Below, piece after piece: positions 19,714 through 64,000 of a DNA stretch of 64,000 nt. The position numbers and the translations under genes are program-made. Source of the DNA: Thalia democratica. Taxonomy: Eukaryota. The notes under the pieces were generated by a model. That model had not been told where the DNA came from, made no database searches, and was given only the letters and a program-made list of their open reading frames with translations. Numbering within the stretch: position 1 is the first letter of the stretch; the number at the start of each line of letters is the position of its first letter. The DNA lies in contig OZ241830.1 of assembly GCA_965202585.1 (NCBI GenBank), forward strand, positions 31,062,001 to 31,126,000, in the 5' to 3' direction.

Positions 19714-19762
19714 GTTTATTTTCAATAGTACCTAAAAAGAAGCTCTTGTAACCTTTGAATAG

Positions 19763-19840
19763 TGTTTAGAGCTGAATGATTGCTGTTGTTAGTTCTTTGT
19801 TTTCTGGAGAACTAATTCACTAATCATACAGTTACAAACA
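19763..19840 (+). ncRNA. pri-miRNA-like hairpin H2 (predicted mature arm 3p, GAGAACUAAUUCACUAAUCAUA)
   Basis: ~35-bp stem including the lower stem. Basal UG. CAAC ~15 nt past the predicted 3' cut. 3' arm is 21/22 identical to the paralog; 5' arm has 6 differences. Confidence 0.8.
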
Positions 19841-19881
19841 TTCAACCTACTACATATTACACTTTAATATGACAAAATCTG

Positions 19882-19959
19882 TGCTAGTAGCCAAATGATT
19901 TGAAATGGATACTTCTTTGTTTAAAGAGAAGTATCATTTCAGTCATACAGTTACAAACA
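19882..19959 (+). ncRNA. pri-miRNA-like hairpin H3
   Basis: UGAUUUGAAAUGGAUACUUCUU pairs with GAGAAGUAUCAUUUCAGUCA. Basal UG. Both arms are essentially identical in the paralog. Confidence 0.8.
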
Positions 19960-20010
19960 AACAATCTAAAAGCTCAAGAAAAGAAAAATTAGATAACAAT
20001 AATAAATCAT

Positions 20011-20101
20011 TGCATATTGCAGTAAGGCAATTCTATTAGTTCCCTGTTTAATGTTAATTTTATAACAGGAACTAATATGGTTGTCTTTCTGAATTAATGC
20101 A
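20011..20101 (+). ncRNA. pri-miRNA-like hairpin H4 (type B)
   Basis: AGGCAAUUCUAUUAGUUCCCUGUU pairs with AACAGGAACUAAUAUGGUUGUCU. TGCAT...ATGCA base with basal UG. Confidence 0.75.
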
Positions 20102-20214
20102 TAAATAATTGTTACTTAAGCTTAAATAGTGAAATTAAAGGTTAGTTATAAATTGTATGTTTGTTAAATTTTGATATAAACTAATTTATAGAAATTTTTA
20201 AGTATCTTTAAATG

Positions 20215-20296
20215 TGTTTTGAGCTAAATGATTGATGATAAATAGTTTTTTATATAATCAAAAAAACTATTTCCACCAGTCATACAGTTACAAATA
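20215..20296 (+). ncRNA. pri-miRNA-like hairpin H5 (predicted mature arm 3p, AAAACUAUUUCCACCAGUCAUA)
   Basis: Stem with the shared scaffold and basal UG. 3' arm has 1 difference and 5' arm 4 differences versus the paralog. Confidence 0.75.
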
Positions 20297-20366
20297 AACA
20301 ATCTAAAAACTAAAATGTTATTTAGCAATGAAACTCATGTTGAAAATTCAATGGACTGTCAGCCAC

Positions 20367-20452
20367 TGCTTATATCGACAAGGCATTCATGTTAGATTCT
20401 GTTAAATATTACTTAACAGGAGCTAACATGAATGCCCTACTGATTTATTGCA
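20367..20452 (+). ncRNA. pri-miRNA-like hairpin H6 (type B)
   Basis: GGCAUUCAUGUUAGAUUCUGUUAA pairs with UUAACAGGAGCUAACAUGAAUGCC in a near-perfect stem. Basal UG. Confidence 0.75.
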
Positions 20453-20466
20453 TAGAAAAATGACAT

Positions 20467-20522
20467 GAAGCTAAAATGTTTTAAGAGACTATTAACATTA
20501 GTCATATAGTTACAAGCAATCA
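20467..20522 (+). pseudogene. Internally deleted relic hairpin H7
   Basis: Keeps the scaffold (GAAGCTAAAATG...AGTCATATAGTTACAAG) but has only a short stem. Absent from the unit 2 cluster. Confidence 0.5.
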
Positions 20523-20595
20523 ACTAAAAACCTTAAGAGGTTTTAATGATTATTTTGAATGTGTAGAACTTCTCAAATAATTTTTACTTTTGTTA

Positions 20596-20966
20596 CAGGG
20601 TTGTCATAAAACTTAGAATGCTGGAAAAGTCTGGAATTACACAATTTAGGCTAAGAAAAGCTTGAAAAACCCCAAAATTAAAAAAAATTGTAAAAAAGGG
20701 AAAAATATGGGATTTTATATAAAATTCTCTAAAAATCATGGAATTTTAAACAATTTTTACAAGTTAAGTAGATAAATATATTTTGTCACCACCAACCTTT
20801 TTTATTTTTAAAAACCCTTTCAAACTTTAACAGTACATTTTCAGTGTTGCTTTGCTACTTAATTAAATTCCTGACCCTAAACTTAATTTCAAACTAAAAA
20901 TAGACCCAAAAATGTGTACTATGAAAATACCTGAAAGAAATTTTTCAAACACTAGAGGCAACCCTG
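20596..20966. mobile_element. hAT-like MITE (CAGGGTTG family)
   Basis: Termini CAGGGTTGTC...GGCAACCCTG. A truncated ortholog lies at ~53000-53310. Confidence 0.7.
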
Positions 20967-23409
20967 TAGTTAGCTTTGTAAGAATCATTTACACTAGTTA
21001 TACAATTAAATACAAAACAATGTACACAAACTATTAACTGGTCAATATACCATAACTATAATTAGAGCTAGAACAGTTGGGTTAAACAGCTTAAATCTTT
21101 GCAGAAAATATATTTACTTGAAAGAAGTTTAAAACATTTATATTCTAGTAATTAAGTAAAAAATTCATGCTTGTTATTACTGAAGATATGTGTTTGTATA
21201 ATGGCCACTAAACCTGGAATGCTAGAAAAAACTGAAAAAAATCTTGAAACTGACAACTTAAGCTAAAAAAAGCCTTGAATTTAAGAAAAAGTTTTAAAAA
21301 AAAGGAAAAACTTTGAACTTTAAATACTTTTTACACATAAGTTTTGTAAAATTTTGATTAGACTGCAAAATTCTAAAGTAAAGTTTTGTCACAAATATAG
21401 ACACTAAAAATTTTGTCATTACCAATTTTTTTTTACAATTTAAAACATATTTAAAGTAGTTTAAGAGTATCTTTTCAATAGTGTTATACTACTTAAAACA
21501 GTTTTTTTAACCTTATGCTTAACTTGAAATAAATATAGAAAACCTTGTAAAGGTTTCTCAAAAGTAGGTGGGCAACCTATGTATGTAATTTACTAACAGC
21601 TGATACCTGATTCATTTTAAATAGACAAAAATTTTATTTACACCAATTATTTAGTTAATTTATTTACCACATTGTACAAATAATTAAACAAAAAAAAAGA
21701 TTAAAATTAGTTAAGGTAATGTTTTTGAAATAGTTAATTTATTATGAAACTACCTAAGCTGTTTTTGGGTACAAATAAATCATTACTGATAAAAAAAAAG
21801 TTGTTAATCTTATTAATACCCACTTGCCTATGTTAAAAATTTTATTGTGTCCTTTTTCATGAAAGTTATGTTAGGAGATAATTCTTTAGTTTAACTTTAG
21901 CTAAAAATAGTAAATCATAGTTTTTAAAATTATTAAGCTAGCAAAACTATTTTCGTCCTGCAATTTGAAACAATAAATTTGTTGCTCCAATTTAGTTGCA
22001 ATGCAAGATAATTATTTTTAACAAAAAAAAAATCTGTATCTATTCATAGCTACAAAATTAAAGTAGTAAAAACTTTGATCGTAAAAATGTGAAAAAAAAA
22101 TTTTTAACAAACAAATGATTTAAAACTTTATTTCATCATTTTTTTAGTTGTTAATATGCCTGCAAACTTTAGGAAACATTTTTTGAGTTTTAGATTCTTA
22201 CTTTATGTACCAACTAGTGAATTTGGTTTGAAGTAATATTTAAAAAAAATTCGTTGAGTACAAAATTGGTAAAAATTATAATTTGTCTATAGCTTGAAGT
22301 GAAGGTTCTTATCAAAACTGTTAAGTTATTCTATATTAAGGTTTTCTACTGACGGTAAAGTTTTATTTAGTGCCAATTATAATAAAATTTAAAAAGATTT
22401 AAGTTTCAATTTACATTTGTAGTTAGAAGTGAAGAGAAAAAAGTTCTTAGACGTATTTAAAGTTAGTTTTAAAACTTCTAGTAGACCAGGCCAGAGATTT
22501 CCGTAAAAAAACTGTTTCAGAAACTTAGGGCGCATAAGCAATAATGGTAAGTGGGCACAAAGCCACAATTTGAAACTTATACTAGAAATTCTTGAGTTGA
22601 TGATATAGAGAAAAAACAGTTTTATGCTTATTTAACAGTTCTTTTTTAAGAGAGGGAGCCATTGCTTTTAAATTTTTATTAATAGTAGCCTTATGAAAAA
22701 ATCTTTTAAATACAGTGATCTACAGAATAGTTTTTTAGAATTAATTTTCATGATCGATTTATTTGGCAGAGATTTCAAAAGGATTGCTTTTCTACTAGTT
22801 ATTAACCTTTTACTTTAACGCCCTATAACTAGTTATTATTTCGTTAAATAGTTAATTTTAAGGATACCCTGTTTCAAATATAACATATATTTAATGTTTT
22901 TAAAACAACTCTAGAATTACTCAAAGATCTAAAAATTTTAGTTATATTAGAGCTCAGCTGACAATTTCAAAATTGCCACCTATTTTAATTGTGATCTCTC
23001 CCCTAACTTTTTAAAATCTCCCAAAAGGCGATATCGCCTTCTATGAGTAACCCACACCTGATCTTAGACAAGCTCAAAATTGCAACTTATTAGTTGATAA
23101 TAATAAACCTCCTTCATTATAGATCACTTTTTAAAGCATAGACCAAAAGTGCCTAATATTTGTTATCGAACGACAAAAAAAATTTGGATTAATTGGTCAT
23201 AGGAAATGGTTTACGATAGGACCTTTCGGTTAACGAGTCGTACAACACTTGGTTATTATTTGACATTTGATCTAAAACGAGTTCAAAAATGGACAGTTTG
23301 CAAAATTAAAAACAGTAATAAAAAGTTATTGTGAAACTTTAGAAAACAAAAATTATTATCTTATAAAAGTCTTATCGAGTAACATTTTTTTTATTTTTGG
23401 AAAAGAATA

Positions 23410-23620
23410 TAAGAGGCATGCTGTATTTTTAAAATATTTTATCAAATACCTTTAGCTAATTAAAAACTAAAACATCATGTTTGAATATTAACACAGAAAT
23501 CTTCGATTTAAATAAAGAACAAACTACACGTAAAATTTCAATGCATACAAGATTATTAATAACGGAGATTCCATATCTCTTTACTTCTATATCCTTTTAA
23601 ACAACGTATGCAATAAATCA
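23410..23620 (-). mobile_element. Possible decayed DNA-transposase fragment (Sola-like), paralog at ~55545-55790
   Basis: The unit 2 copy translates SAKGTGRNTQEITACLC, recalling the E-x-x-G-R-x-x-x-E-I-x-S-C-L motif of invertebrate DDE transposases. The family assignment is from memory only. Confidence 0.3.
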
Positions 23621-26600
23621 GGCTAAATTTTATAATAAGTAGATAAATTATAATAAATATTTTTTTTTGTTTTGATTCGAAATTTTCTTACTCTATGAAG
23701 AGGTTTTATAGAAATACGATTACTCTCAAACAATTTGAAAAAGTATTATTCATACTATCTGTACAAATTACTTGGTAGAAAAGCCATACATTCGCCCCTC
23801 AGGAATCAACGTTCTCCATTGGTTACGTTCTCTTTTTAGTAACGCACTTAGGAATTTTTAAGAAATATGGAATAAAAAATTTAATGCTCAATATTTTATG
23901 TTTTTTGTAACATAAAGTAGAAAAATTGAAATGAATTTTTAAAGAATTTTAAAATAAATATTAAAACAATAAATAAGAGGAGATATATTTTTAGTTATTT
24001 TTATATTGTTGCAGTTTTATTTTGTTATATCTATAAGGAGCCTATAGATAGAATCTAATCATTTTATTTTATACTTTAAGTGTTTTATCCATCTTTTAAA
24101 GTTTAAACTTTTAAATCATATACATTACAATGCTCAAATCCTCAAAAAGTTGTAGCATAATGTTACATTTAAACTTAACACATATCTTACTTTTAGCTAA
24201 TTCGTTCTTTGCCAACCTTCTTACAAATTCGTTCTTTGCCAACCTAAGATTAAACTTGTCTTGTATCGTACTACAGAAAAATTCAAGACAAGTATAACCT
24301 TTAACCTTAAGTTGGTAAGAAACAAAAAAAAAAAAAAATTTGTATTCACTAATAGAACTTTTATTTACAACATTTTACATGTATGTACATGTCAAAAAAA
24401 AAAAGTGTTTTCTTAACAAAAACTTGAAAAGTCTTCAATCATAAGGAAATAAACCAATAAAGTAGGTATGTATGTTTAATTGCGTTTAGTTACGCACTTT
24501 TGTGGTGGACACAATGTTTGAAGATTGGCGAGAGGTGACTGTACATAATAAGCATATACAAAAGTACCAAAATAAAAAGTATTTGTTTAAAATGAATTAA
24601 GTATGTTTATTTTCAAGCTAAAGATTATGAAAAGATAAGGCTTTGCTTATACTCAAAATCAGATGTTTGTATATTAGAAATTGTTTATTAATACAATATT
24701 TATCATTTAACGTCAACTAAAACTTAATAAACTTATTGTTGTCTAAAATTCAGATAGTTTTTCAAACATTTATTCTCTTTAAAAAAACTAGCTCAAAACT
24801 AGTTTGTTAAAGATTAAAACATTTAATCGATTAGCACAATTACATCTTAAATGATTCCTTTCAATTTGTATTTTTAAGATTCATTTAATAAAAGTTTACA
24901 AAATAATTAATATATATTGTTTTATGACCACTAAATTTACCTGTTTTTTAATTTTCATTACTTATAAAAGTTATCTTGTTCAAAATTAGCTTAATGGAGC
25001 TCACAATTGTTGTTCGATATAAACAAAAAATATCTTGAACGAATTCTTTTAAATTGTTTAAATCAATTGTTTATTTTGATTAAATAAAACAATTTAAAAA
25101 TATTCTTATAACCTTGAAATTCAATTAATCTTTTGTATGTTTTTTCTTCTTAAAGTAAGCACAGTATCAAATTAACTTAGTGAGCTTAAAATTCTTATTC
25201 AATTTTTCAATTTTTTTTCTCAAAATGGTTTTGAAAAGTCTGTATATTAATTTAATTAAAGTCGTAAAGGTTATTAAAACAAATTAAAAAATAAACTTGG
25301 TTCATATAAAGCTTTTTTTGTTTGGTATTAAAGGTAGTTTTTTATTATAAACTAGTTTTTGTTATAATTTGAAATTTTTTAAACAAGACCGAAAAGCATA
25401 AAACAAAAAATAACTAAAGAAGATACTCAGGCAATTTGTTTTTGGTAGTGCTGTATTAATGTTTACTACCAACCGACTATAATTATTTATAATCATTTTA
25501 TTTATGTAGTAGTTTATTTAGTTTTAACGTTTTTCGCTTTTGGTAAAAAAACAATAAATTGATATACCTGGCATTGTTTGATTTAAATTTGTTAAATACG
25601 TGATTACTTCTATATCATTCAGAGATGGACAACATACCATCAGTAAAAAATCTTTCTGACCAGAATTTCATTTTGTAATTTTGAAAACTACTACAGAACA
25701 AATAAATTAAAAAACATGAGTGAACAGAAAAATAGAGTGTGATTCAAAAATAAGTATGACTTTACAACCAGGTTTATTATTAAAACTTTGAATTATCAAT
25801 TACAAATATGATCTTGAACAAATTTTTAACTAACTTAGTATATGTTGACAAAATAAAACGGCCTGCATAAGTCCATGACTTATAATCCTTGCTAGATAAA
25901 ACAGACTGTAGCATCTGACTCACTGGCTAGAGAAATTATCTTAATCTGAAGGCAAATCTTTTTTGAAATTTATTTTTATAGTTTTTAGTTAACGTTTTCT
26001 TCAAACTTTAACGCAAACAATATTAGGATTAAAATAATTACTGTTCTGTAATGAATAAAACAAAATGTAAGATCCCTGTATTTTAAAGTCTAAATTTTGC
26101 TATGTCAAAAAGCTAATCAAAAACTGTTTTTTGCATATGAAAAATTTCATCTATAACTGTTGAAGCACATAAGTAGCTGTTATATGAAATACAATTGATA
26201 AGTTCAGCTAATGATGTGTGTAAAACATAAATTTTTAATGAGCTACTCATTGTTAATTCAGTACACACTCAGAAAGAAGTATAATTTTTACAATTCATCA
26301 TGTTTTGTGCAGTTTGATAGACACATAAATGTCTGCGTTTAGATATTTAAGTGCTTTTGTTGCTAGTAGTACTGATTTTTAAATCTTTGTGCCTGAGTGG
26401 AACTAACTGTATTTATATATTTTAGTGTGCTGTTTCTAAATAACATAAAACAAAATCTAACTGTACATTTGGTTCTAATTGATTGTTCTCATCCACATTT
26501 AATATATACTTTGAACAGTTTTTAACACTGAAACGAAAAAAGATCTTTTTATATATGTTTTTTTTTAAGACTATGTGTACATATTGTAACAAAGTATTTT

Positions 26601-32258: not shown

Positions 32259-34272
32259 TAAAAAGCAAAATGTTGTTTAATATTTTTCTACTTAAACTAA
32301 ACACTTTTTTGTTCAAGCAAAATTTTTTTATTTGTGTTCTTATTACATAACCTTTAATAAATCACTTTTATTTACCTAAAAAGATTAAGTACAACAAATA
32401 TACGAACCTATTACAATATAACTCCATTTATAGTAGAAATAAATTTACTATTTTACTGTAAAAACTACTATAAATTTTTGTTCATTTAAAATAGTAATAA
32501 ACTTAAATAATACTTTCAAAAAACTCTATAGTTAAACAAATACTTTAACAAAAATAATTGAGTTAAATAGTTTAAATAAACTCAAAAAATATTTAATTAA
32601 AAACAGAAATTAGTAAAAGCAAGCAGAAAAGTAAAAAATATTTAATTTTTAAATGCGTTAAAACATTCTATAAAATTTAATTAAGTTTTTTTATCAAATT
32701 TATTAATCATTACTTTTTTTTATTAATTACTTTTTTCAGTTAAAATACAGTTAAAACAGCATAAAAACATCCTATTGACCTTAAAAAGATTTAAGTGCAT
32801 TGTTAATTGAATATTGTTTTAGGTAGAAGTACATATAAAGCAGTATTACAACGTTCTAAACAATTTAAAAAGATTAAAAGTAATAAAACCTAAAAGTATA
32901 TTTAGTCAGAAGACACCTAAAACAGCATTAAAACGTTCCAAAGAATATTGAAAGGTTAATAAATAGATATAACTAAAAGAACTTGTAGCAATGAAGAACA
33001 ATAAAATTTTAAAAAAGAAATTAAATTTTGTTTACAAATTAAGATTATTTTAATTGTGGGAATTTCAGTCAAAACACTTAGCATATTAAGAAATATTAGC
33101 AGTTTTTCCTCAACACCGTTTTACAGGGCTGCCAATTTTTTTTTTGCAAAATTTTCTCCGGGGTTTGAAAACTTTACGTTTTTGGGTTTATTTTTAGTGA
33201 AAAGTTAAGTTTAAGGTAAAAAACTACTTTATTGAATGACAAAAAAAGCTTTCAAATTATTTGGTCCTGAGATTTGTTTCACGAAAAACCTTTCGGTCAA
33301 CGTGTCGCACACCTTTAGAATGCCGTTCAACGTCTTGTCCAGGACTTTGTCTTAAATTGTCAAGGACCTTCCTTATCCAGAATATTGTCCTAAATAGTAC
33401 AAAAACATTTAAAAGATACTGTAAAGCTACTTGTAATGTGTTTTTTTTTATTATTGATGATGACTACCAAGATTATTAATATTAAAAATCTAACAATCAA
33501 TAAATATAAACATTTTAGGTGATTAAACAATGATTTAATCAATGTTATCCTTATTTAATCCTATTTACATTCACAGCAAATAATAAACAATTTCTTTACT
33601 TTAAGTTTACTTTATGTATCTAAAGAATATCTAACTACTACTCGCATTTACAAAGTAACATTATATTTTATTATTTTCTGCATCTTCAAAATCTTTTTTT
33701 ATTCTTCAAATTTTATAATCAAAATTTTAACTCAATATAGTAATACAAATTAGAATAAATGTTCAAGATTGTTTGATTAGCTTTTGGTTTTTATGTTCTG
33801 TTTAATTTTTTTTTAATAACTGATGAATCCAGTTAATAAGACATATTATGATTTAAAACTTAATTTATCAAAATTGCACATTTCTATCATTAAATGATAT
33901 TTAATTATCAAAAACGAGGAAGTGGAAATGCTGTAAACATACAAAAAGTTCAAAAAATTGTCTAAATTGTCTTGCTTAAATCTGCACCAATTATGAGTTA
34001 CTATAATTAAAATAACTAATAGAAGTTGTTAAGAAAAGAAGTAAACATATTTTTATTTGTATCCAAGACCGAAAGTGATAGAATTCGGTAGAAAACTTCT
34101 ATAACTCATAAAAAACAATCTAAATTTGTGTAAGTTTAATTATTTTTTTTTATTACAAAATAACTATAAATAATAAAAATATGTAATAAAATTTTTTTTT
34201 AACAACCGTTTATCAATTACTTTAGTTATTTAAATTTAAATAATACTTTAAAATATACTGTAAGTAACCTGA

Positions 34273-34333
34273 CCTAGGTGTGCACTTTGATCACATCATA
34301 AAAGACGTACTCAACCGACAGTGCACACCTAGG
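34273..34333. other. 61-nt stem-loop with a perfect 14-bp inverted repeat
   Basis: CCTAGGTGTGCACT-N33-AGTGCACACCTAGG. Degenerate paralogs at ~60657-60718 and ~63753-63810. Confidence 0.7.
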
Positions 34334-35199
34334 ATTTTTGTCTTATTACCTACATTAAGCCTATTACAGACATAGTAGAAGCTACTAAAGTTTACAAATG
34401 ACTCTTAAAACAAAATGCCTTAAAACAAAAGCTTCCACCATAATAACAATACATATTTTTTAAAGTATATTAGAAGTCTTGAATATTTATTTAAGATATG
34501 TGTTTAAATAAAAGTATTTATCTTTGTATATTTGTATTTATATGAGCCCACAAAGATTTATAAAATCTGTCGTAATTTGTTATATTTTTAAAATTTACAT
34601 ACTACATACAATTAAATAGTTATTTTAAACAATTAAAGATATCAAAGGTAGAGTAAAACATACATATGAATAAAGGAGGATAAAATATTGAGGTGCTCAT
34701 AGTAGACTGAGGTTTCCATAGTGAATAAAAGCAGTGATGGTTTTAAGAAAAAGTGCTGAAAACTTTTGTTAATTTTAGAAGTATCTTACTTCGTTTACAT
34801 GCAACTATTATAGCTACCATAAATTCAAGTTAATTTATTTTAAATTGTAATTTTCATATTTTTTTTAAGGTAGATTTTGTTAAATTTTTTATTATTTTTG
34901 TTTCTATATTTATAATTAGGATAAACAAATTTAAGTTACACTATTTGTTAATTCTTTAAAGAAAAAAATATTGTTATTTTAAATAGTTTTTATACAGTTT
35001 TTATATTTATAACTTTTTTATGTTTACTTTATTTTTATTTTATAACTAGTACAGTACAATTTAATTTCAAATCTACATTTTTGTCTTATGACTTCTGAAT
35101 TTTTGTTACATAAGTACAAACAAGTTCATACCAAATCGGCAGATTGTGCTATTTGAATGAGACAGAAGATAGTTAAACAATAAAAAACAATATTTAGAA

Positions 35200-46464: not shown

Positions 46465-47408
46465 GTATTTTAGATTTTCTCGAATTTTGATTTGTCTACA
46501 ATTTAAATTATTAGATTAAACTTTGAATACAATTTTTAATATTAAAATTAGACTTTTTTCAGTATCATTTATAATAATCATTTATATATTTAACAACATA
46601 TTTAACTATTTTTAAGTACTTTAACAAAACAAAACACAAAAAGATTCAAGATATTAAGTTAAACTGCTCTTTTTTTACAAAAAAAAATTAATCACTTAAT
46701 AAATTGTACATCGAAAGTTTTATAAGTTTTTTATCTAGTTTTTATCTAGTTTTTAAATATCAAAATCTTTATTTTCAATGTATACTTTTATCAATTTCAT
46801 AAATTAAAGTCTAATCAGCATTTTTATGTTCACAAAAAGCCAGTGGTAAATTTTTTAAAAGTTGTTTGTTATTCCTCAAGTTTTGTTATTATATTTTTAA
46901 AAATTTAAACAGTCTTGGATTTTTTCAAAATAAAATAAACTTTGCTAATAAATTATAGAGATACATTTAAAGATAAGTTGTGATCTTTTATACAAATGTA
47001 AACTAACTTCAATACAAGTAGAAAAACTTTGTCAAAATTTAATGAAATATACTACAACTCTATTAAATATTATTTTTGTAATTATATATGTTTCAACCTA
47101 TAGTCAACTGCTTTAAATAAGGGGAAATAACCCTTGATATAAAATATCTCTTTTTAGTATAAAATGAAAAAATTCAACAAAAAATTAACTTAATTAAACA
47201 AAATAATAAATTTCAGTACACTTTTAACATACATTTGCTAACTTAATACAAAACTACATGTTTTTCCTTATAAAAAATATGTTACATGTTCAATCATTTG
47301 GTCAAATTATGATTTTTTCAACTCAGTTAGCAAAAACACATCAGCTTAAAGAAAAACTTGTTAATGCAGGTTTTGATTAGCTAATTTCTTTTAATTTCTC
47401 CTTTTTAG

Positions 47409-47439
47409 AAAAAAAACGAGATCACTATGTGTTATAAAG
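47409..47439 (+). other. Candidate 31-nt micro-exon
   Basis: ttctcctttttag|AAAAAAAACGAGATCACTATGTGTTATAAAG|gtgagc. Confidence 0.4.
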
Positions 47440-50400
47440 GTGAGCTATTGAAATATCCATACTCTTTTATCTTTCTTTTATTATCGCAAACAAAGCAATG
47501 CAATGCTAATGCTTCTGCTCACCAGTGTTGATTACATGCATATTACAACGGCAGAAAAACTAAAATCTTTACTACATTTTAGATTTATATTTAATACGAA
47601 AATTCTAAATTTTCTCAATTAGTTGGTTGTGTTTCGTTTTTAAGTTTTAATAAAAGTTTAATAAAACAGAACACTGTTTTTTTTTACTACTGTTTGATGC
47701 TATTTCAATTCTGAAAGACAATTATTTTAAAATAAGGGAAAACAACCTAGAATACAAAACAGGATAAATTTATATACAAAAATAATTTAACATAACAATT
47801 AGTTGATTTAAAAATAAAATAATCACAGAACTCAAAAAATTTAGTACATTTTTTACCTGCAATTGATAAAAAAAAGTGTAAATTTTTGCCTTATATATAA
47901 ATATTTCTACTTTTATTACTTGATTTACTTAGAAAAAATTAAAATGAATTAGTTATAACACTTAAACTTCAATAAAAACAAGAAGGCCAAGTGTTAACAA
48001 GGTAAGCTCTAAATATAGTCTTACGCATTTAACTTTCTCATTATCGAAACTTAACTGAAATGCAACCCTAGCCTAAACTTACTGTTCATTACGTGTCTAT
48101 AAAATCTCTGTATATAATACTATTTATTTTAAAGACAGTAATAAGTTAATAATTTTTGGCTATTTTAAAAAATACCTTTTTTCGATTCACAATAAGTGTA
48201 TGTAACAATATGTATAACAATAAGTAACTGAAGTAGAAAAATGAAACACTGTAGTTATAATATTTTTGATACAATAAATTATAGTGCTTGAAAAAAATTA
48301 AAAAAAAATTTGCGTTTAGATGCTTAAATCTTCTCTTTCATTTCTTTATATGTTACAGCTAATTTAATAGTTTTAAAATAGTTAACAGAAAAAGAAACGT
48401 CTATTTTAATTAAACCATTAAAGAATTAATATTTTAAGTTAAAAATTTATATTACGATTAAAAAGGACATCAGAATAAATCGTTAATTTTTTTTAAGATT
48501 TGTAATGTAATTGAATTACTAAAAACAGTTAAAAACTTGAAATTAAATTGAATTAAATAATTTTAGTTTTTTTTTCGACTAAGCAGCTTAAATATTTTTT
48601 TATTTGCTAGGAGATATCATTAGATTTCGCAAAAAACGTTGATATAATTTCTTGCGGCTAATAACTTCCTCAGTCATCTATCTTTTTTTTTCAACCAGCA
48701 AATACTTACTACCATTCCCTCTCTTTTCATTTTATGTAAAACAACCATTATGTAGTTATGTTACAATCCATTAAAATCAACAAAACTAAAGATGAAATTA
48801 GTCAGACGGGTTGAATTCATTCTATCTAAATTCCTATGTTATTTATTAAATCTTAATAATTTTCATGTAAAAAACTTCTATTTAAATAAAATAAGCTTAA
48901 CCAAAGTTTAGACATCACAGTTTTGTTTAAATTTGTAACTTAAAAAACGCTTTTTTAGTATAAAAAAACTTAGTTAATTTTAACCTCAACTTAATCTAAA
49001 AATATTTTGCTATCTAAGTACGAATTATTATTAATATGACTTGTCATTAAAATTATGTAGTTTTTGTATAACTCATTATAAAAATAAATAAATTATTGCT
49101 ATTTAAAAATAAGAAAACAGATTAAATAGAAACATTGATAAGCGTAAAGCAAAATATTTACTCGAGTTAGATATTTTTTAATCAATACAAAATTCTTTTT
49201 ATTAATTTGATTTTCAATTCAGCAATTTTGAAGTTATTTCTCAGAATTATAACTAAGTAAAACAATTTTTAAATACAGTAGTAAATCTTATCATACAGTG
49301 ATTAAGTACTTAAAGTGTTCCTTTTTGTAATTATTTAATGATAAAATTAAAACCTTAATCAAAATCAAGAACCGTTGTAGTATGTTTTTATAATTTTAAT
49401 ATATTGTTTATTTACGTTATAAAAGCACTTAAAATATACAGTCCTAGGACCTGATGCACATAAAACCTTTCAGTCAATGTTTTTATCGTTGATTTAGAAC
49501 ATTAAGAATTATTTCAGAACTTATAACAATTTAGAATAATTTTTTAAACATAATTTTCTTAATATTTTTTATGTTGTTGTCCGAGAGTTGGAGTTACAAA
49601 CGTTTCCTTGTTTTAATTAAAAAGTATTTCAGCTAATTTAAGTCGTAAGTAAAAAATAATTGATGTTGTGTGTCAGTTTAGTTAAGTAAAATTAGTTTTA
49701 AATCAAATTATATATAAATTGATATAACTAGTTTTTGAAGTTTTTAGCTAATAACTTGTTTACTTTTTTATTAAATATTTTTTTTTTCCCTAAAGACTTG
49801 AAAAATATTATTATCTACTCTTAAAGTTTTAGTCGAAAACAAAAGCTTAAAAAAAATAAGATAATTAAATGCACCTTGCGTAAATATTTAAGTATGTTTG
49901 AGATGAAGTATTGCATAAGTAACTTTTACAAACTTCTAATCAAATATATTAATTTTATTAACAAATACATAATAGATATTTTGTCAAAATTTTAGAAGTG
50001 ATGAAAAATTTTTCATACTAAATTATATTACAGATATATTAATTCAAAATAAATAAAAGCTACTAAAATCTTGTAATTTATAACTTTAAAAGTCTTAGTC
50101 AATTTTGTTACAAATTTCTCAAATAAAGTCCGACAAGATTTCTAAAGCATGACATTTTGTATAAAACACTTACGCATTTTCAGTATTCAGAAAGATTTTT
50201 TTTTTGGTCAAAGCTGTTAGCATTGTCAGAATGTTTCAGAAAGAAATTTGAAACATTTTCAAGATATTCTTACGTGAAAAATAAATATTTATTCTAGTAG
50301 TTGAGTTTTTTAACTTATTTATTTTATTAGTAGTTAGTTTACTTGAAATCTAAAAAAAGTTAAATAAAATCTAACTGTTTATACACTAACATTAATGAAA

Positions 50401-51018
50401 AATTATTTTAATTTAGTATAAAAGTATATACAACTTTTTGATTGCTTTGTTTTGCGTGAATTAAGTGTTAGGCCAGTGAATGATCTATATTTTTTAATAA
50501 AATTTATATCATCCCTGGTTTCGTTAAGAACAATTATGGCTTTTCGTAATTACAATTTTGACCATTTTTGTTAGCTGCATGTAATTTTTAGATCATTTAC
50601 TGACACAACATTTTGATACAGCAGTTCCATAATATAAAAGTAAGCAAGAGAGTTTGTTTTAAATATAGGTATAGTAGATATTATTCTGATTCAGAGTTTG
50701 TAAATATGTTAAAACATATGCACATCTGAATAATGATTTATGTAACTTAAATAGTTATTATTAATTTATGTGATGTAAATATTGAATAAAGTTTACAACT
50801 TCTTTGGTTGCTATACAGTGTGGTCATTTCAGGCTAGTTGAAGAATTAGAAAAAAAAACTTAGTTTCGGCTAATTATAACTCATTAAATTTAATTTAAAG
50901 TGAGGCTTACTGGGGCTATTTATAAAATTTAATTCTGGTTTTCTAGCTTTTTTAAGTTTTATCAGGTTACCATAAATTATTACAGATTGAATTATGCTTA
51001 TTCTATTTATGGTTAACT

Positions 51019-51359
51019 CAGGCTTGTCACTTACCTGGAAAAACCTGGAATTTGACAACTTAGTCATAAAAAACCTGGAACTTAACAATTTTAACATGCT
51101 CATTAGTAAAATTTCGAATTGACTAAAAAAATCATAAAAATAAAAATAATTTCAATCATCAAAAAATTTTTTCATTGAATAACAAATTTGAAGTAGCTTT
51201 ACAATATCTTTTCAATGTTTTTATACTATTTAACACATTTTCTTATCTTAAACTTAAGTTTAAACTAAAAATAGACCAAAACATGTGTACTTTTAAAAAT
51301 CTACAACAAATTTGGAAAACCTGGAAAATTTAAAAAAAAAAAAACGAGTGGCAATCCTG
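51019..51359. mobile_element. hAT-like MITE (CAGGGTTG family), not seen at the homologous unit 1 site
   Basis: Termini CAGGCTTGTCAC...GTGGCAATCCTG. Inverted orientation relative to 28296-28675. Confidence 0.75.
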
Positions 51360-52172
51360 GTAACTTTATTTTAGTTATGTATAGTAATAATGTTATTTTA
51401 AAAATTTTTACCTCTTGAATGTTTATTTACATTCAAAAATTGTTTATTATTAAAAAGCAATGTCATTTAAGATAAGAAATCGAAATATTTTTGAATAAGA
51501 TCTTATTTATATAAGTGTTTAAGTTATGCTGTTTAACTGAATTTTCAAAGACCAAATTCTAAACAGATTATATTCACAAAATATGCTAAATTTAAAAAGA
51601 TAATTGACATAACTCTAATTGTTCTCTATTTCTTTGGTTTTGTTTAAGTTTGTACCGAAAACTGTTTAAACTGTAATAGATTTTTAGTGTGGAGCAATCA
51701 TTTGGTTATAACAGCTGCACATAGTTTTTCTATTGTATTTAGTTAACTGAAAAAATAAAGTCGCCCCTGAACTTTACATCTTAATAGATATGCAGACATA
51801 TAAACTTAGTGTTAGTTTAAAAGTTTTAATTCTATTTAAATAGATTCACTTTATTGAACTTCATAAAAAATGGTGTAGTTGTTTTAAATTTTAGGCTAAA
51901 TTTTTTAAACTTTTTCAAAATGTTTTAATTAATTTTTTTTTTAAAGAAGTAGTATGTTTTACAGTTTTATGTATGGCTTGACTACTTAAGTGGTTTATAA
52001 TAAAAGTAAATTTCAAACAATTTAAAGTGTCTAGCAAAATATTATAATAAAACTGTGTTAATATATAATCAATGGTTTCTAATAAATTTTTAGTAAAATT
52101 AATTAATTGTTTAGAAAATGTTTATTAGTTATTTAATAAACATTTTTTTAAATTTAATTAGTTATCTTACTT

Positions 52173-52249
52173 TGTATGTAGTAAAATGAATGGCAATAAT
52201 GGTTCTCATAATAAAAAAAACATTTTTTCCATTCATACAATTACAAACA
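52173..52249 (+). ncRNA. pri-miRNA-like hairpin H1'
   Basis: 5' arm matches H1. The 3' arm has changed but still pairs. Basal UG. Confidence 0.7.
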
Positions 52250-52298
52250 AACTTTCTTCAAAAGTACCAATCAAGAAGTTCTTTTGACCATGGAATAG

Positions 52299-52376
52299 TG
52301 TTTAGAACTGAATGATTAGCGCTATTAGTTCTTGGTTTTCTGAAGAACTAATTCACTAATCATACAGTTACAAACA
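52299..52376 (+). ncRNA. pri-miRNA-like hairpin H2'
   Basis: 3' arm AAGAACUAAUUCACUAAUCAUA. Basal UG and downstream CAAC. Confidence 0.8.
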
Positions 52377-52411
52377 TACAACCTATTACTGATGCGATGT
52401 GATGATTACTG

Positions 52412-52489
52412 TGTTTGCAGCTAAATGATTTGAAATGGATACTTCTTTGCTTAAAAAGAAGTATCATTTCAGTCATACAGTTACAAACA
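52412..52489 (+). ncRNA. pri-miRNA-like hairpin H3'
   Basis: Near-identical to H3 in both arms. Basal UG. Confidence 0.8.
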
Positions 52490-52537
52490 AACAATCTTCA
52501 AACTGAAAAAAAGGACTATACAACAACAATTAAATCA

Positions 52538-52627
52538 TGCATATCTCAATAAGGCAGTTCTCTTAGTTCCCTGTTTAATTTAATTCAAACACAGGAACTA
52601 ATATAATTGCCTTGCTGATTTAGTGCA
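52538..52627 (+). ncRNA. pri-miRNA-like hairpin H4'
   Basis: Most substitutions versus H4 interchange G:U and Watson-Crick pairs, so the stem is retained. Basal UG. Confidence 0.75.
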
Positions 52628-52739
52628 TAAATAATTGTTATGAAAGCACCAAGTGTGAACAAATTGGTTGGTGATAATCTTAATATGTCTGTTCATCTTT
52701 TGTAAAATACTAACAAAAATATTTGGTGTTCATTAAGTG

Positions 52740-52821
52740 TGTTTTGAGCTAAATGATTGGTGGTATGTAGTTTTTTATCTAATCAAAAAAACTATTTTCA
52801 CCAGTCATACAGTTAAAAACA
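52740..52821 (+). ncRNA. pri-miRNA-like hairpin H5'
   Basis: 3' arm AAAACUAUUUUCACCAGUCAUA. Basal UG. Confidence 0.75.
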
Positions 52822-52888
52822 AATAACCTACAAGGTACCTTCATTCAGCAAAGAAATTCAAAATTGAAATTTGGTGGCAATTAGTTAC

Positions 52889-52980
52889 TGCTTAATTCGA
52901 CAAGGAATTCATTTTGGTTTCCTAGTTAATATTGGCTTAATAAACAGGAGTTAACGTGATTACCCTACTGAGTTATTGCA
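52889..52980 (+). ncRNA. pri-miRNA-like hairpin H6' (weakened stem)
   Basis: Homologous to H6 but with several mismatches and bulges. Confidence 0.5.
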
Positions 52981-55900
52981 TAAGCATCTGTTATTCTTTA
53001 ATCCTGGAAAAACCTTAAATTTGACAACTTAGGCTAAAGCAACTTTAAAAAAAGTCACATTATTACCAGAAATAACCAAGAACTTAAACACAAAAGCCTT
53101 ATACATAGATTATATTTTTTGTCAAATTTATTTTTAAGTACATTTAAAGTAGCTTAAGAGAATTATTTTAATGTTATTATACTCTTTAACACAGTTTTTT
53201 TCACATTATTTAATTTTTAACTAAAAATAGACCAAGAAGGTGTTTTTTTAAAATTTAAAAGAAATTCAAAAAACCTAGAAAATGTTTCTCAAAAACCAGT
53301 GGCAACCCAGAAATATATTTTTAGAACTACTTCGTTACTATAAAAGAACTTAAAATCATGTAATTTCTAGTTTATAAGTAGAAAAAGTAATATATACTTT
53401 TATTGGAGGGTGGCCACTAAAAAAAACTAGAAAATTCTTGAATTTTACAATTTAAGCTTAAAATACTAGGATTTTGAGATATTTAAAAAAAGCAACTGGA
53501 AAACCTTGAATTTTTTATAATTTTTACAAATTTTGTAAAATTTTTATTAAACATTAAAAATTTATCATAAAAATTTAAAATAAAGTCATTATTAATTTTT
53601 TTCTTATAAAACCTTATAAAGTTGCTTAACAGTATTTTTTCAGTACTATTATAATACTTAATCCTCTTTTTACTTTAAACTTAACTTCAAATTAAATATA
53701 GATCCAAAAGTGTACTTTCAACAACCTTAAAAAAATCCAAACAACCAAGAAGAAATTTCTTAAAAACCAATGGCCAACCTGTGTTTGTAATTTACTTATT
53801 GATGATAAATGATTCTTTTAATAAAGCTAAAAGAATATTTTACATCAACTTTATAATTGCAAACAAGCATTTTACATACAATTATACAAAAAAAAAGAGA
53901 AAAATTAGCAAAGGGAATGTTTTCGAATCAAAACTATACTATGATAGTAGCTAAGCTATTTGTAGTACAATTAAACCCTTTATTGATGAAAAAACTTGTT
54001 ATTTCTATTAATGGCCACTTGCCTATGTTTAGAATTTTCATTTGTCCTTTTTAATGAAAATTGTGTTAGAGGTTATTTTATTTTAATTATAGATAATAAT
54101 AGTAAATGATAGTTTTAAAATTTATTAAGCTAGCAAAATTATTTTTGTCCTGCAATTTGAAAAATAAGTTTGTGGCTTCTTTTTAGTTGAAAGGGAATCA
54201 CTTCTAACCAAAATAAAATTCTGTATTTATACATAGCTACAAAATTAAAATAGTAACAAACGACTTTAATTGTAAAAAAATCTAAAAACAATTTCTTCTC
54301 AAATAAATGGTTTAAAATTTTATTTCATCAGTTGATAATATGCCTGAAAAATTTTGTAAAATTTTTTGAATTTCAGAATCTTACTCATGTACCAACTAGT
54401 GACTTTGAATTGTTTTTAGTACAAAATTGGTAAATATTATAATTTATGTATAGTTTGAAGAGATGGTTCTTATCAAAGTTGTTTTGTAAATCTATTTTAA
54501 GTGGTTTCTACTGCTGATGAAGGATTATTGAGTGTCAATTAAAAAATGGAAAATGTCAATTTACATTTGTAGTTAGAGGTGAAGAGAAAAAAGTTCTTAG
54601 ACTTACTTAAAAGTAGTTTTAAAACTCATAGTAGACCAGAGCTTCCCGTAATCAACTATTTCAGAAATTTAGGGGCCATAAGCTAAAAATGTAGAGGTAG
54701 GGGGGCTCAATGCCACAATTTCAAAATTAGATTGGATTTTATTGAAGTGATAATAAAGATAAAAAAAGGTCTTAAGCAATTTTAACATTGGTTATTGAAA
54801 GAGTGGTCATATTTTTTTAATGTTTTCAATGGTGGCCCTATGAAAGTTTTGTTGGAAAATTCTGATCTACAGCATATTTTTTTGAGTTTATCTTCGTTAT
54901 CAATTTTTTTTCAGAAAATTTAAAGGGATTACTCATTTACTAGTTATTACCTTTTTCATTTTTTGCACTATCGCTACTTATTATTTCCAGATATCATTAA
55001 TTTAAAATAACTGTGTTTTATATCTCATCTATATTTAATGTATTCGAACAACGTAAAAATTAATCAAAGATTTAAAAACTTTAGTTATATAGCTCAACTC
55101 ACAACTCCAAATAGCACCTTTTTCTTACTTTTTGCTGGTTTCTACCTCTCCCTAAACTTACTAAAATCGCCCCAAAAGGCGATATCACCTCCAATGGGAA
55201 ACCTTCATGGGATCTTAGACAAGCTCAAAATTGCAATTTATTAGTTGATAATAATGTAGCTCCTTAATTATAGATAACTTTCATAAAGCATAGGCTAAAA
55301 GTGCTTAGTATTTGGTAATGAACAACAAAAAAAAAAACTCAGACTAATTGAGCAGAAAATAGAACATTTCGGTTAATGAGTCGTACACCACTCCTTAAAC
55401 TGGGTCTAAAACAGATAGTTTGCAAAAATAAAAACATTAATTATACGTTATTCGAAATTTTAACTAACAAAACAAAAAGCTATTTACTATAAATGTTCTT
55501 CTTTCCGGATTAATATTTGTAATCATTTTTCTTATGAAAATACCAACAGAGGCACGCTGTGATTTCTTGAGTATTTCGGCCAGTTCCTTTAGCTGATAAA
55601 AAAAATTAAAGCATCATATTCGACTATAATCATATATAATCTTTCATTTTAATAAAGAACAGATAAATTTCGATTGGAATTAAGAATGCAATAAAGTTCA
55701 TACATACCATACTTTTTTACCTTGAAATCATTTAAAATGACGTTTCCAATGAAAACCGGGCAAAATTTTATGGTAAGCTTGTGTTTTTGTTAAGCTTCTA
55801 AATTTATATCCTTTATTAATGAGTAAAATGGATATATGAGTAGTCTTCGAATGTTTTTTAAATAAAAAGAAATGTTTTGCTACCTAAAGAAATTAACTAC

Positions 55901-59659: not shown

Positions 59660-62600
59660 TACTAGAGTGAGATCTACTATAATTGCAAAACAAGAAAAAT
59701 CAATTTTGGTGAACAATGAAAGTTATATTGAAAAATGCACTTTTAGTCAAAACGCTGAGCATTTTAGAAAGTTTAAACAACTTTTAGTAAACAACTTTTT
59801 AATAACATTCTTAATATTAAAACTTTAACAATCTTTAGAAAATATAGTGATTAATAAATGATATATTAATTTTATATTATTTAAATTTTCAACAAATAAT
59901 AATAATAACTTCTACATCTTAAGTTTACTTTATGCACCTAAACAATGTCTAATTACATTTCGTAGTTACAATACAACATTATATTTACTATTTTCAACAT
60001 ATTGAATATTGATTTTATTTTTAGTTTCTTCAAATATTGTAAGACAAAATTATAACCTTAAAAAGTTATACAAAATAGAATAATGCTTAAGATTGTTTGA
60101 TTAACTTTTAATTTTTATGTTCTAATTTAGTTTTTACTTTTAAAACTGATGAGTCCTGTTAGTCAGACATAATATGAATTTTAATTTTTTTTATTAAAAT
60201 GCCTCCTTAAAATTTCTTTAAAAGATATTTAAATATCAGAGAAGGGTAGGTGGAAACATGCAAAAAAAGGTAAGTGGGTAAGTGTAAATATACAAAAAGC
60301 TAAATAATTTGTTCAAATTTTCTTGTTTAAATCTCCACCAATTATGAATTACTATGGTTAGAATTACTAACAGAATTTGCCAAAAAAAGATGAAAAAATA
60401 TTTTTAACTTGATTCAGGAGCAAAAATACTAGAATTGAGTGACAAATTTACAATGTTATTAGAAAACAATCTAAATTGATATAAGGGTAGCTTAAATTAC
60501 AAAACGATTACAAATAACAAATTTGTTTAGCTAAAAATATACTTGAACTAAGTTAATGTTTTAACTATACTAAATAATTTTTAACAATAACTGATTAATT
60601 ATTTTAATTGTTTAATTTAAAAATATACTTTATAATATATTGTATAGTAACCTTATACCTAAGTAAGCACTTTGATCACATCATAAAAGACATACCCAAC
60701 TTGCAGTGCATACCTTGGAATAAATACCTTGTCATTAAATACCTACATGAAGCCAAATACAGACATACTGAAAGCAACTAAAGTTTATAAATTACTCTTA
60801 AAGCAAAATGCACTAAAACAAAAACTTTAACCATGAAAAAAGAACGACCAAAAAACAAAACATACTTTATAAAACTTTTTTAGAAGTCTTGAGTATTTAT
60901 TTAAGGTATGTATTTATATTCGTATATGTATATTACATTTAATTCCTAATTTAAAATAAATACAGGTGTAAAGGATAAAATAAAACATAAGTATAAATAA
61001 AGAAAGATAAAATAATTAGATGCTCATATGAGACTAGGGTCCATATTCAATATTAGTAGTAATCCATTCAAGAAAAAGTAGATAACAATTTTGCTAATTT
61101 TTAAAGTGTCTTATTTCGATTTCATGTAATTAATATAACTGCCACAATTTCAAATTAACTTACAAATTATAAGCACTGTTCATAATTTTTGTTAATATAA
61201 ATTTTGTAAAACTTTTTTATAATTTCTTTATCTAGGTTAAAGCAAAGGGTGTAAAAATTAAATTGCATTGTTCGTTATTTGTTTTATAAACAAATTTTAA
61301 TATGTTTATTCGGAAAATTTTACATACAATTTTTAAGTTTATAACTTTTTTATAGACACTTTAATTTTGTTTTACTTACAAAGTACAGTGCAATTTTTTC
61401 TATAATATACTTTTTTTTCTGTTTTTTAATTAATTTTATAGTACAAGCAAATTGCATATTAAAATTAAGTTCATACCAAATCGGTAGTTTTTTTCTATTT
61501 GAATGAGATAGGAGATAATTAAACAATAAAAAAAAATTCCATTCTGAGAAAGTTAATTGCTCTACATTAAAGAAAATGATAAAAAAATTGACAGAAGTCT
61601 TGAAAAATCAACTAATGCACTTCTTAATAAAAAACAGGAAATTAATGGAAAGTTAGCAAATCAGACAGAGCTGCTAGAATCCAGAAAAAAATTACTTGTT
61701 TTACTATATAATTAGTTAAAAGGTATTAAAAATGGGTATAAAATTGTTTTTAATTACTAATAAGGTAATAAGATACACAATAATAAAAAGAAACACCAGA
61801 TGATAGTTTTAAAAATATGTACAGAAATAAAAATATTACTCAAAAAAAAATAATTATTTTTTAAGGCAAATTGTTACAAAAAATTAACAACTGTAAGTTT
61901 GTATGGATTACAAAGAAACAGTTTATCTAATACAAAAATGGGATAGAACACGATTACTAAAAACTTATTTCAGACTTAAGGAATCTAGTTTCTTAACTTA
62001 GAATTTTATTCTTTTGTTAAGAAGCAATTAATAGTTTAATGTCTGTATAAAACGTGAATATGCTTTTTTAGTGTGTAAAAAAAGTGTGAAAAATAATTGT
62101 ATGTATTATTAAATATACAGCAAATGGTCACATTTTAAATTTAGAAAAATTATAGTTCCCAATTTGTTTCTTCAAGTAAATCTAATGAACATTTTTTGCC
62201 ATTAACTGTTTAGTCCAGTAAGTATTTTTTAGTATATTTAGCAATAAAAAATTTGAAAACGTTAAATATACGAACCAATATTAATATGACTGCAATTTTA
62301 GACAGAAACTATGTATTGTTTTACAATAAAATTATTATAAGCTTCTGTTCACTTTAAATAATGTTAAACTTTAATAGTATTTAAAAAAAGATCATTATAA
62401 ATATAAAAAAATTTTAACAAAAATAAATGAGTTAGATAGTTTGAAACACCTTAAAAGACATTAAACTCAAAACAGAAATCAGCAAAACAAAGCAGAGAAG
62501 TAAAAAAAAAATTAATTCAAAAAAAAGTGTAAATAAGTTCTCTAAAATTATAAAAGGTTAAAAAGTAGATTTGCTTGATTTTTTTAGTTGAAATCTACTT

Positions 62601-64000
62601 AAAACAGCATAAAAACGTCATATAGACTTTTAAAAGGTTTTAGTGCACTGTTGATGGAATATATTATAGTTAGAATACACCTAGAACAGCCTTAAAGCGT
62701 TCCAAAGAACTTTAAAAGGTTAAAAAGTAGAAATTGATGGCAATGAAGAACAATAAGAATTATGACAAAGAAAATTCAATTTTGCGGAGCGATGAAAGTT
62801 ATATTGAAAAATACACTTTTGGTCAAAACACTGAGTAAAATAGTAAGTTTAAACAACTTTTTAATAACATTTTTAATATTAAGACTTTAACAATCTATAA
62901 CTTTCAGAAATTATGATGATTAAAAAGTTATTTAGTTAATTTTGTCACTACAAATTCTTATTTTAATTTTCTACAAATGGTTAATAATAATTTCTTCACT
63001 TTTAGTTTACTTCATATATGTAAAGAATATCTAATTACTACTCCTAGTTACAATGTAACATTATATTTACTATTTTCAGCATCTTGAATATTGATTTAGT
63101 TTTTGTTTTCTTCAAATGTTATAAGACAAAATTATAACTTAAAGTAGCAATACAAAATGGAATGAATGTTCATGATTGTTTGATTAACTTTTAATTTTTA
63201 TGTTGTGTTACATTTTTGTCTTTATAACTGATGAGTCCTGTTAATTAGACACATTATGAAATTGGATTTTTTTTTTTTTCAAAATGCCTCATTAAAGTTT
63301 CATTATAAGATATTAAACTATCCAAGAAGGGTAAGTGGGAACATGCAAAAGGTAGGTAAGTGGGTAAGTGTAAATATGCAAAAAGCTAAATATTTTGTTC
63401 AAATTGTCTTGTTTAAATCTGCCTAAATTATGTATTATTATAGTAAGAATTACTAGTAGAAATTGTTGAGAAAAGAAGAAAAAGTATTTTTAACTTGTAT
63501 CCAGGAGCAAAAATACTAGAATTCAGTAAACAATTTACAGAACTGTTATAAAACAATCTAAATTTGTGTAAGGGTAATTCTTTTTTTTTGTCACTACAAA
63601 ACATTATAAATAAAAAATATGTTTAGCTAAAATCTACTTGAACTAAGTTAATGTTTTAACTATACTAATTAATTTTCAACAACAATTGATTAATTAATTT
63701 AATTATGTACTTTAAAAATATACTAAAATATATATTATGTAGTAACCTGCAACCTAAGTCCCCACTTTGACCACATCATAACGTACCCAACTGGCGGTGC
63801 ATACCTACGAATTTTGGTCATTAATTTCCTATATTAAGCCTAATACAGATATACTAAAAGCCACTAAAGTTTACAAATTCCTTTTAAAACTAAATTTTTT
63901 TAAACAAAAACTTTAACCATGAAAAAGAACGACCAAAAAATTATACATAGTTTATAAAAATATACTAGAAGTCTTAAATATTTATCCAAGATATTTATTT
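59660..64000 (+). repeat. ~3.1-kb local tandem duplication
   Basis: GATGAAAGTTATATTGAAAAAT.CACTTTT at ~59720 and ~62790; CTGATGAGTCCTGTT at ~60147 and ~63228; the stem-loop at 60657 and 63753. Confidence 0.8.
61500..62300 (+). mobile_element. Third, truncated copy of the LINE 5' region
   Basis: Homologous to 35150-36300 and 1-1000 (TTTAAGGCAAATTG..., TTTCAGACTTAA, decayed PHD at ~62090). Confidence 0.65.

Follow-up and report, generated by a model that had tools for sequence, protein, structure and literature searches.

The vertebrate miR-430 and primate C19MC loci are large arrays of paralogous microRNAs (miRNAs), and the part that the miR-430 members share is the seed of a known guide. Cnidarian miRNAs pair with their targets over nearly the full length and slice them. 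In Ciona intestinalis, species-specific tandem clusters of 25 (in about 4 kilobases [kb]; mir-2200/2201/2203) and 11 paralogous miRNAs have been described; miRNA offset RNAs (moRs) derived from basal stems are abundant there, and antisense products frequent (Hendrix et al. 2010, PMC2884542). Here, we analyzed a stretch of 64,000 nucleotides (nt) from Thalia democratica (contig OZ241830.1 of assembly GCA_965202585.1, positions 31,062,001 to 31,126,000 of the forward strand; hereafter the window, in whose numbering all coordinates are given). At 52160-52982 it holds what we take, with a probability of about 65%, to be the second copy (unit 2) of a lineage-specific polycistronic miRNA-like cluster, whose paralogue (unit 1) lies at 19625-20454. 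In the proposed pathway, a single RNA polymerase II primary transcript would cover the hairpins, the first cut, by Drosha/DGCR8, would fall roughly one helical turn up from the basal junction, and Dicer would then release duplexes of about 22 nt. The cluster pair is most likely an ordinary lineage-specific miRNA-like cluster, with unit 2 slightly more decayed than unit 1.

Like the Ciona clusters, this locus is a dense series of same-strand paralogous hairpins (about 130-160 nt per hairpin, with little spacer) that is lineage-restricted and built by tandem duplication. Unlike them, the whole cluster is present in two old, diverged copies 32 kb apart, and searches of public runs found no small-RNA data for it, whereas small-RNA reads, moRs among them, support the Ciona loci. 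What recalls miR-430 and C19MC is that one hairpin family has reached tens of copies, in which one part of the stem is common and the rest variable; there is no homology, however, and conservation here is strongest in the 3' basal strand TCATACAGTTACAAACA, most of which falls outside the predicted 22-nt duplex. Should the hairpins be borne out by small-RNA data, they would represent a lineage-specific miRNA family kept in two old duplicate clusters in a poorly sampled animal group, and the pair would offer a natural experiment on the hairpin-by-hairpin decay of duplicated miRNA clusters, in which one hairpin was lost in one copy and stems were reciprocally weakened in both.

A BLAST search of 52100-53100 against the window returned one long paralogue, with 52160-52982 matching 19625-20454 at 77.4% identity over 839 nt. 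Self-comparison placed four further blocks in collinear order (16058-16203/47348-47493, 16761-17654/48543-49399, 18203-18818/49987-50619, and 21222-23639/53417-55777), which at 66-71% identity are weaker than the cluster. The second copy, 52160-52982, therefore probably arose when a segment of about 8 kb was duplicated long ago, as judged from these alignments. When both units were aligned globally and read in 100-column sliding windows, identity was 70-88% in the cluster and mostly 45-70% in the upstream flank, and it fell to near zero just upstream of the cluster because unit 2 has inserted sequence there; the flanks of the duplication as a whole are 54-67% identical. The surrounding DNA is AT-rich (22-33% GC across the window), and a search of the window for coding sequence found no convincing exon near either cluster. 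Each unit carries six hairpins, A to F, on the + strand within about 0.8 kb and about 110-130 nt apart. Their folds were compared with 200 dinucleotide shuffles per hairpin, and the features are as follows.

47348-55777, no strand: unit-2 side of the segmental duplication, carrying the cluster; partner 16058-23639, collinear BLAST blocks 66-77% identical.
19625-20454, + strand: unit 1, the paralogous cluster; BLAST identity 77.4% over 839 nt.
52171-52251, + strand: hairpin A (H1), family 1; minimum free energy -19.2, z -5.18, 0/200 shuffles as good; 5' (5p) arm 52171-52201, 3' (3p) arm 52221-52251.
52298-52377, + strand: hairpin B (H2), family 1; minimum free energy -30.7, z -7.34.
52412-52489, + strand: hairpin C (H3), family 1; minimum free energy -31.6, z -6.95.
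52537-52628, + strand: hairpin D (H4), family 2, a paralogue of F; minimum free energy -31.2, z -6.85.
52740-52821, + strand: hairpin E (H5), family 1, closest to C; minimum free energy -28.8, z -5.58.
About 52889-52980, + strand: remnant of hairpin F, family 2; its 115-nt fold has z -0.65, with 54/200 shuffles equally good.
19636-19715 (A), 19762-19841 (B), 19882-19959 (C), 20010-20102 (D), 20215-20296 (E), and 20367-20452 (F), + strand: the unit-1 hairpins; folds z -2.9 to -6.7.

Comparison of the two units gives good evidence that purifying selection for RNA pairing acts on the stems rather than on the spacers. With arms, loops, and spacers delimited by the unit-2 folds (for F, by the unit-1 fold), 390/454 arm positions are identical between units (85.9%), compared with 76.9% of loop and 200/320 spacer positions (62.5%), and the difference between arms and spacers is far from chance (Fisher's exact test, p = 8e-14), so that the hairpins are conserved above their surroundings. 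Moreover, at the paired sites of a two-copy consensus fold we found 18 changes that keep the pair, 17 of them exchanges between G:U and Watson-Crick pairs and one a double change in the decayed hairpin F. Because such a fold retains only compatible pairs by construction, the reverse strand was run as a control: the + strand yields 155 pairs, 18 kept changes, and -112 kcal, and the - strand 132 pairs, 8 kept changes, and -87 kcal. In an alignment of eight family-1 members, compensatory double changes occur at 7 of the 25 consensus pairs, and G:U pairs are kept in most copies. In hairpin D, all five changes at paired positions are swaps between G:U and Watson-Crick pairs.

The folds themselves are distinctive in this window, where a fold of -27 kcal per 100 nt or better is found at only 17 places on either strand, 8 of them in the two clusters. 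Unit-2 hairpins A to E have z-scores from -5.2 to -7.3, none of 200 shuffles folding as well, and resemble canonical miRNA stems by MirGeneDB-type criteria (at least 16 paired nt in a duplex of about 22 nt, in a stem of about three helical turns), with 31-44 alignment columns per arm, 24-33 Watson-Crick pairs, and 1-3 G:U pairs; across all hairpins, arms span 31-45 columns. Hairpin F departs from this pattern in unit 2, where its z-score of -0.65, against -6.62 in unit 1, places it outside the canonical hairpins, and where it differs from its unit-1 counterpart at 21 of 85 arm columns and by a 5-nt insertion within the delimited 3p arm (52938-52942). It is thus decayed in unit 2, in which five of the six hairpins survive. 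Weakening is reciprocal elsewhere, affecting the base of C and the stem of E in unit 1 and the upper stem of A in unit 2. By eye, CNNC-like tetramers stand downstream of some hairpins, not consistently, and there is no clear apical UGU.

These results bear on a preliminary description of the locus, from which the old duplication of the cluster and the heavy divergence of the spacers relative to the arms are both confirmed by the identities given above, as is its observation that the changes in D mostly exchange G:U for Watson-Crick pairs; the sliding-window profile likewise favors its contrast between cluster and flanks. Its count of five hairpins per cluster has to be raised to six, the sixth being F, which in unit 2 folds no better than shuffles. 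Its proposal that both clusters stayed functional holds in that the stems are kept and the pair-preserving changes fit most members being functional, and fails for F in unit 2.

Hairpins A, B, C, and E are mutual paralogues (family 1), as are D and F (family 2), whose four sequences share 80% mean column identity. Common to family 1 are a basal TG, invariant in all eight copies, and two blocks, AATGA.T on the 5p side and TCATACA on the 3p side. With up to three mismatches allowed, the window contains 11 matches to the motif TCATACAGTTACAAACA, where 0.9 would be expected; nine of them lie on the + strand inside the two clusters, and a tenth is the 5p arm of B itself read on the - strand. The family order 1-1-1-2-1-2, taken with the similarities of C to E and of D to F, suggests that a C-D pair had earlier been duplicated in tandem. 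In unit 1 only, a solitary family-1 3p-arm relic, TCATATAGTTACAAGCA (two mismatches), lies downstream of F at 20502-20518. We considered it as a seventh hairpin and rejected this, as the surrounding 86 nt form no hairpin (z -0.74); it may be what is left of one, and no counterpart was found in unit 2.

Several results weigh against a miRNA-like cluster or limit what can be read from it. B and C have short apical loops of 4-6 nt. No Rfam family matched at gathering score anywhere in the 64-kb window, and permissive scans of both clusters and of single hairpins gave 21-27.5 bits scattered over unrelated families. Searches of public sequencing runs, for RNA and for any kind of run, found no small-RNA or RNA run containing the locus, only DNA-like contig sets. 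Raw appositions between units are 35 of the G:U type and 23 of the A:C type (p = 0.15), which leaves the strand call only moderate. The tens of extra family-1 copies in the genome, discussed below, could also fit a repeat-derived hairpin. Lastly, a pooled permutation test of arm asymmetry in A to E gives p = 0.024 if the differences are independent, and p = 0.09 and 0.2 when patches are collapsed, that is, when the internal-loop patch of B 5p and a similar patch in the upper 3p arm of A are each counted once.

The choice of strand decides what the arms are called. If the cluster were read from the - strand, or from both strands, the 5p and 3p labels would be exchanged and the guides would be the complements of those discussed here. 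Some hairpins do fold as well or better on that strand (unit-2 D at -36.1 against -31.3, as well as unit-1 E and F), the apposition count fails to separate the strands, and antisense miRNAs are common in Ciona (PMC2884542). Set against this are the two-copy consensus, which favors the + strand in pairs, kept changes, and energy alike, and the G:U pairs kept in most family-1 copies, which would become A:C mismatches on the other strand. Transcription from the - strand therefore appears unlikely, and there is moderate evidence, from these folds, for the + strand as the one transcribed; the six hairpins in about 0.8 kb on this favored strand may be polycistronic.

Public contigs show that family 1 extends well beyond the window. 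Contig sets from three sequencing runs contain 31-61% of the sampled words of the locus (two from organism A and one from organism B), and marine metagenomes contain 5-8%, which shows no more than that the organism is marine. Over 51300-54000, these runs have even depth across the flanks and depth that rises with repeat copy number, which is the behavior of DNA and not of expression. At 52816, depth climbs to about 7,600, whereas single-copy contigs stand at about 100-170, and most reads there carry the family consensus C, implying tens of further family-1 copies in the genome; the surroundings of the E 3p arm (bin 52756-52846) are multi-copy. Contigs with loose ends at 52783 suggest that other paralogues keep an E-like 3p arm while their loop and 5p arm differ. 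Right after hairpin F, at 52938-53300, unit 2 also has a very high-copy repeat (depth 26,000-106,000 against the same single-copy range), with sharp edges near 53000, 53038, 53166, 53199, and 53308 and many loose ends at fixed positions; since unit 1 lacks it, unit 2 appears to have taken up one or several insertions here.

Such copy numbers raise the question of whether these are miRNA genes at all. They could instead be a tandemly amplified foldback repeat, resembling a miniature inverted-repeat transposable element (MITE), or a long-hairpin locus for endogenous small interfering RNAs, with stems kept for DNA-level or non-Microprocessor reasons. The abundance of family-1 arms, the high-copy repeat abutting the cluster at about 53000, and the lack of transcript evidence in the sequencing-run searches agree with such an origin. 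The copies in the window, however, form same-strand tandem arrays and are not dispersed; no target-site duplications were seen by eye at the stem ends; and the stems are bulged and of primary-miRNA size, not long perfect duplexes. The compensatory and G:U-preserving changes moreover indicate selection on an RNA fold, and the stems persist while the spacers decay across an old duplication. On this evidence, we rejected a MITE or foldback transposon for the copies within the window (tandem on the + strand, free of direct repeats at the stem ends by eye, and bearing RNA-type compensatory changes), and consider a repeat or small-interfering-RNA locus improbable overall.

Given a miRNA-like cluster, its active strands might be read from arm-specific conservation, which is standard practice, although a comparison of two copies is underpowered for it here. 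The preliminary description had held that one arm per hairpin is nearly frozen and marks the guide. Between units, A differs at 0/31 positions of the 5p arm and 7/31 of the 3p arm (Fisher's exact test, p = 0.011; Bonferroni-corrected, about 0.07), all changes falling in the upper 3p arm, and B at 7/38 and 1/38 (p = 0.056). The remaining hairpins show no such imbalance: C differs at 4/37 and 1/35 (p = 0.36), with both upper arms identical and the 5' basal stem changed, D at 6/42 and 10/44 (p = 0.41), E at 4/37 and 3/36 over whole arms (p = 1.0), and F at 10/40 and 11/45 (p = 1.0). The earlier observations of a frozen 5p arm and rewired 3p arm in A, of six differences against one in B (seven against one by our count), and of conservation on both sides of C (in the upper arms) are thus upheld, and that of four against one in E applies to the upper stem only. 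The comparison suggests that constraint falls chiefly on the 5p strand in A and on the 3p strand in B, with the asymmetry absent elsewhere; one frozen arm per hairpin, as a general marker of the active strand, is weakly supported.

The asymmetry of B is further reduced by how its differences arose. Five of the seven in the 5p arm lie in one internal-loop patch, 52318-52324, and a variant of this patch in public contigs (one base lost at 52318 and a T added after 52320) comes nearer to unit 1; two substitutions and a pair of indels are a better description of the patch. Because they are clustered in one patch with an indel variant in public reads, these differences are not independent events. 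In addition, 52307 reads G, the unit-1 state, in every contig of all three covering runs (X1, X3, and X4), which removes one further B-5p difference. Contigs of organism A have A at 52416 and G at 52307, and some have the indel at 52318/52320, in each case matching unit 1 or approaching it; possible causes are polymorphism of ancestral origin, gene conversion between the two units, or an assembly that carries rare alleles. Among 41 listed of the 299 differences between contigs and window, those inside A to E fall in basal stems (52307, 52416, and 52816), in the loop of D (52584 and an A added after 52590), and in the B patch, and none falls in the upper-stem duplex of A to E. Organism B is 3.3% diverged over 52787-52999, in one long contig, against about 8-10% in the upstream flank, as estimated from partial data in three contigs.

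A serious, though not our favored, possibility is that the hairpins are real and selected and that the arm asymmetry is noise: selection would act on the pairing and processing of both strands, one-sided differences would reflect chance and clustered mutations such as small indels in internal loops, and a comparison of two copies would not reveal the guides. Only one of six hairpins is nominally significant, E differs at four against three positions, and C, D, and F are symmetric; the pooled test loses significance once the A and B patches are counted once, and the B patch contains an indel variant. The frozen runs described below also exceed any guide length, and the 22-nt run of E lies in the lower 5p arm, opposite to the earlier 3p call. 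Standing against noise, the 0/31 and 7/31 of A and the 34-nt frozen run in the 3p arm of B are striking when mean arm divergence is 14%, and the loose-end contigs at 52783 suggest paralogues in which an E-like 3p arm is kept and the loop and 5p arm are not.

The longest identical stretches between units include a 38-nt run at 52167-52204 that covers the flank, the entire 5p arm, and the loop start of A, a 34-nt run at 52344-52377 that covers the 3p arm of B with its basal strand, and two runs in C, of 27 nt in the 5p arm (52423-52449) and of 41 nt in the 3p arm plus 8 nt of flank (52457-52497). In E, a 22-nt run occupies the lower 5p arm (52738-52759), with 18- and 17-nt runs on the loop and 3p side. 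Three of these runs, at 34-41 nt, are much longer than an Argonaute guide and reach the basal stem and flank. Since they exceed a 22-nt guide, what is conserved must be more than the guide, and the runs of B and C include the 17-nt block common to family 1. The constrained runs are probably composites of a mature strand and of family-wide sequence that belongs to the basal stem or serves processing.

Which strand would serve as guide depends on the processing register, which we assume from human primary miRNAs by taking the basal TG as the Microprocessor UG motif and placing cleavage about 13 nt above it. If this holds, the 17-nt family block would lie largely below the predicted cut, the predicted 5p products would all start with UGA(U/A)U, and the seeds of B-5p and E-5p would differ between units while those of B-3p and E-3p would not, in agreement with the earlier calls. 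Were the register 2-4 nt lower, B, C, and E would have one and the same 5p seed (AAUGAU-type) in the two units, which would favor a shared-seed 5p guide. The earlier guide assignments of A-5p, B-3p, and E-3p rest on 1-7 differences per arm, of which only those of A are nominally significant; by sequence comparison, A-5p and B-3p are plausible guides, and the call of E-3p is unsupported.

Near-full-length target pairing of the cnidarian kind had also been proposed from conservation along the whole guide. Conservation of one arm well beyond the seed is indeed shared with cnidarian miRNAs, but the runs of 34-41 nt exceed a guide and nothing in the window points to a cnidarian origin. Whole-length conservation of the mature arm is also usual in bilaterian miRNAs. 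As whole-arm conservation is normal in bilaterians and here continues beyond guide length, cnidarian-style pairing receives no support. A more speculative reading, which we find doubtful, is that family 1 is a small-RNA cassette with a constant scaffold and a variable insert, present in about 50 copies, in which the lower stem (especially the 3' strand TCATACAGTTACAAACA) stays constant while the upper stem varies through compensatory changes. In that case, the frozen runs would represent a miRNA plus a conserved moR, or a lineage-specific processing signal, and not a single guide.

The D and F 5p arms (AAGGCA..U....UUAG.U), at 52545-52619 and 20375-20444, resemble the mir-34/mir-1490 consensus (mir-34 and mir-449 form Rfam clan CL00087, and mir-1490 is RF04237). 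By manual count, the unit-2 D 5p arm shares 13 of the 22 mature positions with the mir-34 consensus, including GGCAGU at 2-7 and UUAG at 12-15, and the best match of unit-1 F is mir-1490, whose consensus also starts AGGCAGU (24.8 bits against a gathering score of 75). The would-be seed differs in all four D and F copies (GGCAGU, GGCAAU, GGCAUU, and GGAAUU). Sister hairpins also score alike on unrelated families, with 27.3 bits for mir-7 on unit-1 D and 27.0 bits for plant MIR9408 on C. We therefore rejected a mir-34 relation of D as unproven, its 27.5 bits standing against a gathering score of 53.4 and unrelated families scoring alike; the likeness of D and F to mir-34 is a lead, not membership. 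A metagenome scan with the two-arm pattern of D returned three unrelated contigs of 34-44% GC without BLAST similarity, which are chance matches, and a full-text literature search with the six arm sequences matched no paper.

Other features of the window lie apart from the cluster. Further strong 100-nt folds occur at 34231-34370 (-38.6 on the - strand), 24221-24330 (-31.1 on the - strand), and 4531-4840 (-32 on the + strand), the first of them within a repeat that recurs at 59804-60919 and 62866-64000. Three intra-window duplications with 79-82% identity (2-2123/35260-37386, 2546-3250/3739-4450, and 59692-60915/62768-64000) are younger than the one that carries the cluster. Within the downstream part of the latter, a block of about 55 nt (GATCTTAGACAAGCTCAAAATTGCAA...) at 55210-55262 is nearly identical to about 23060-23110, in surroundings that at 70-84% identity are better conserved than the upstream flank; the block may represent a fragment of some repeat or have a regulatory role.

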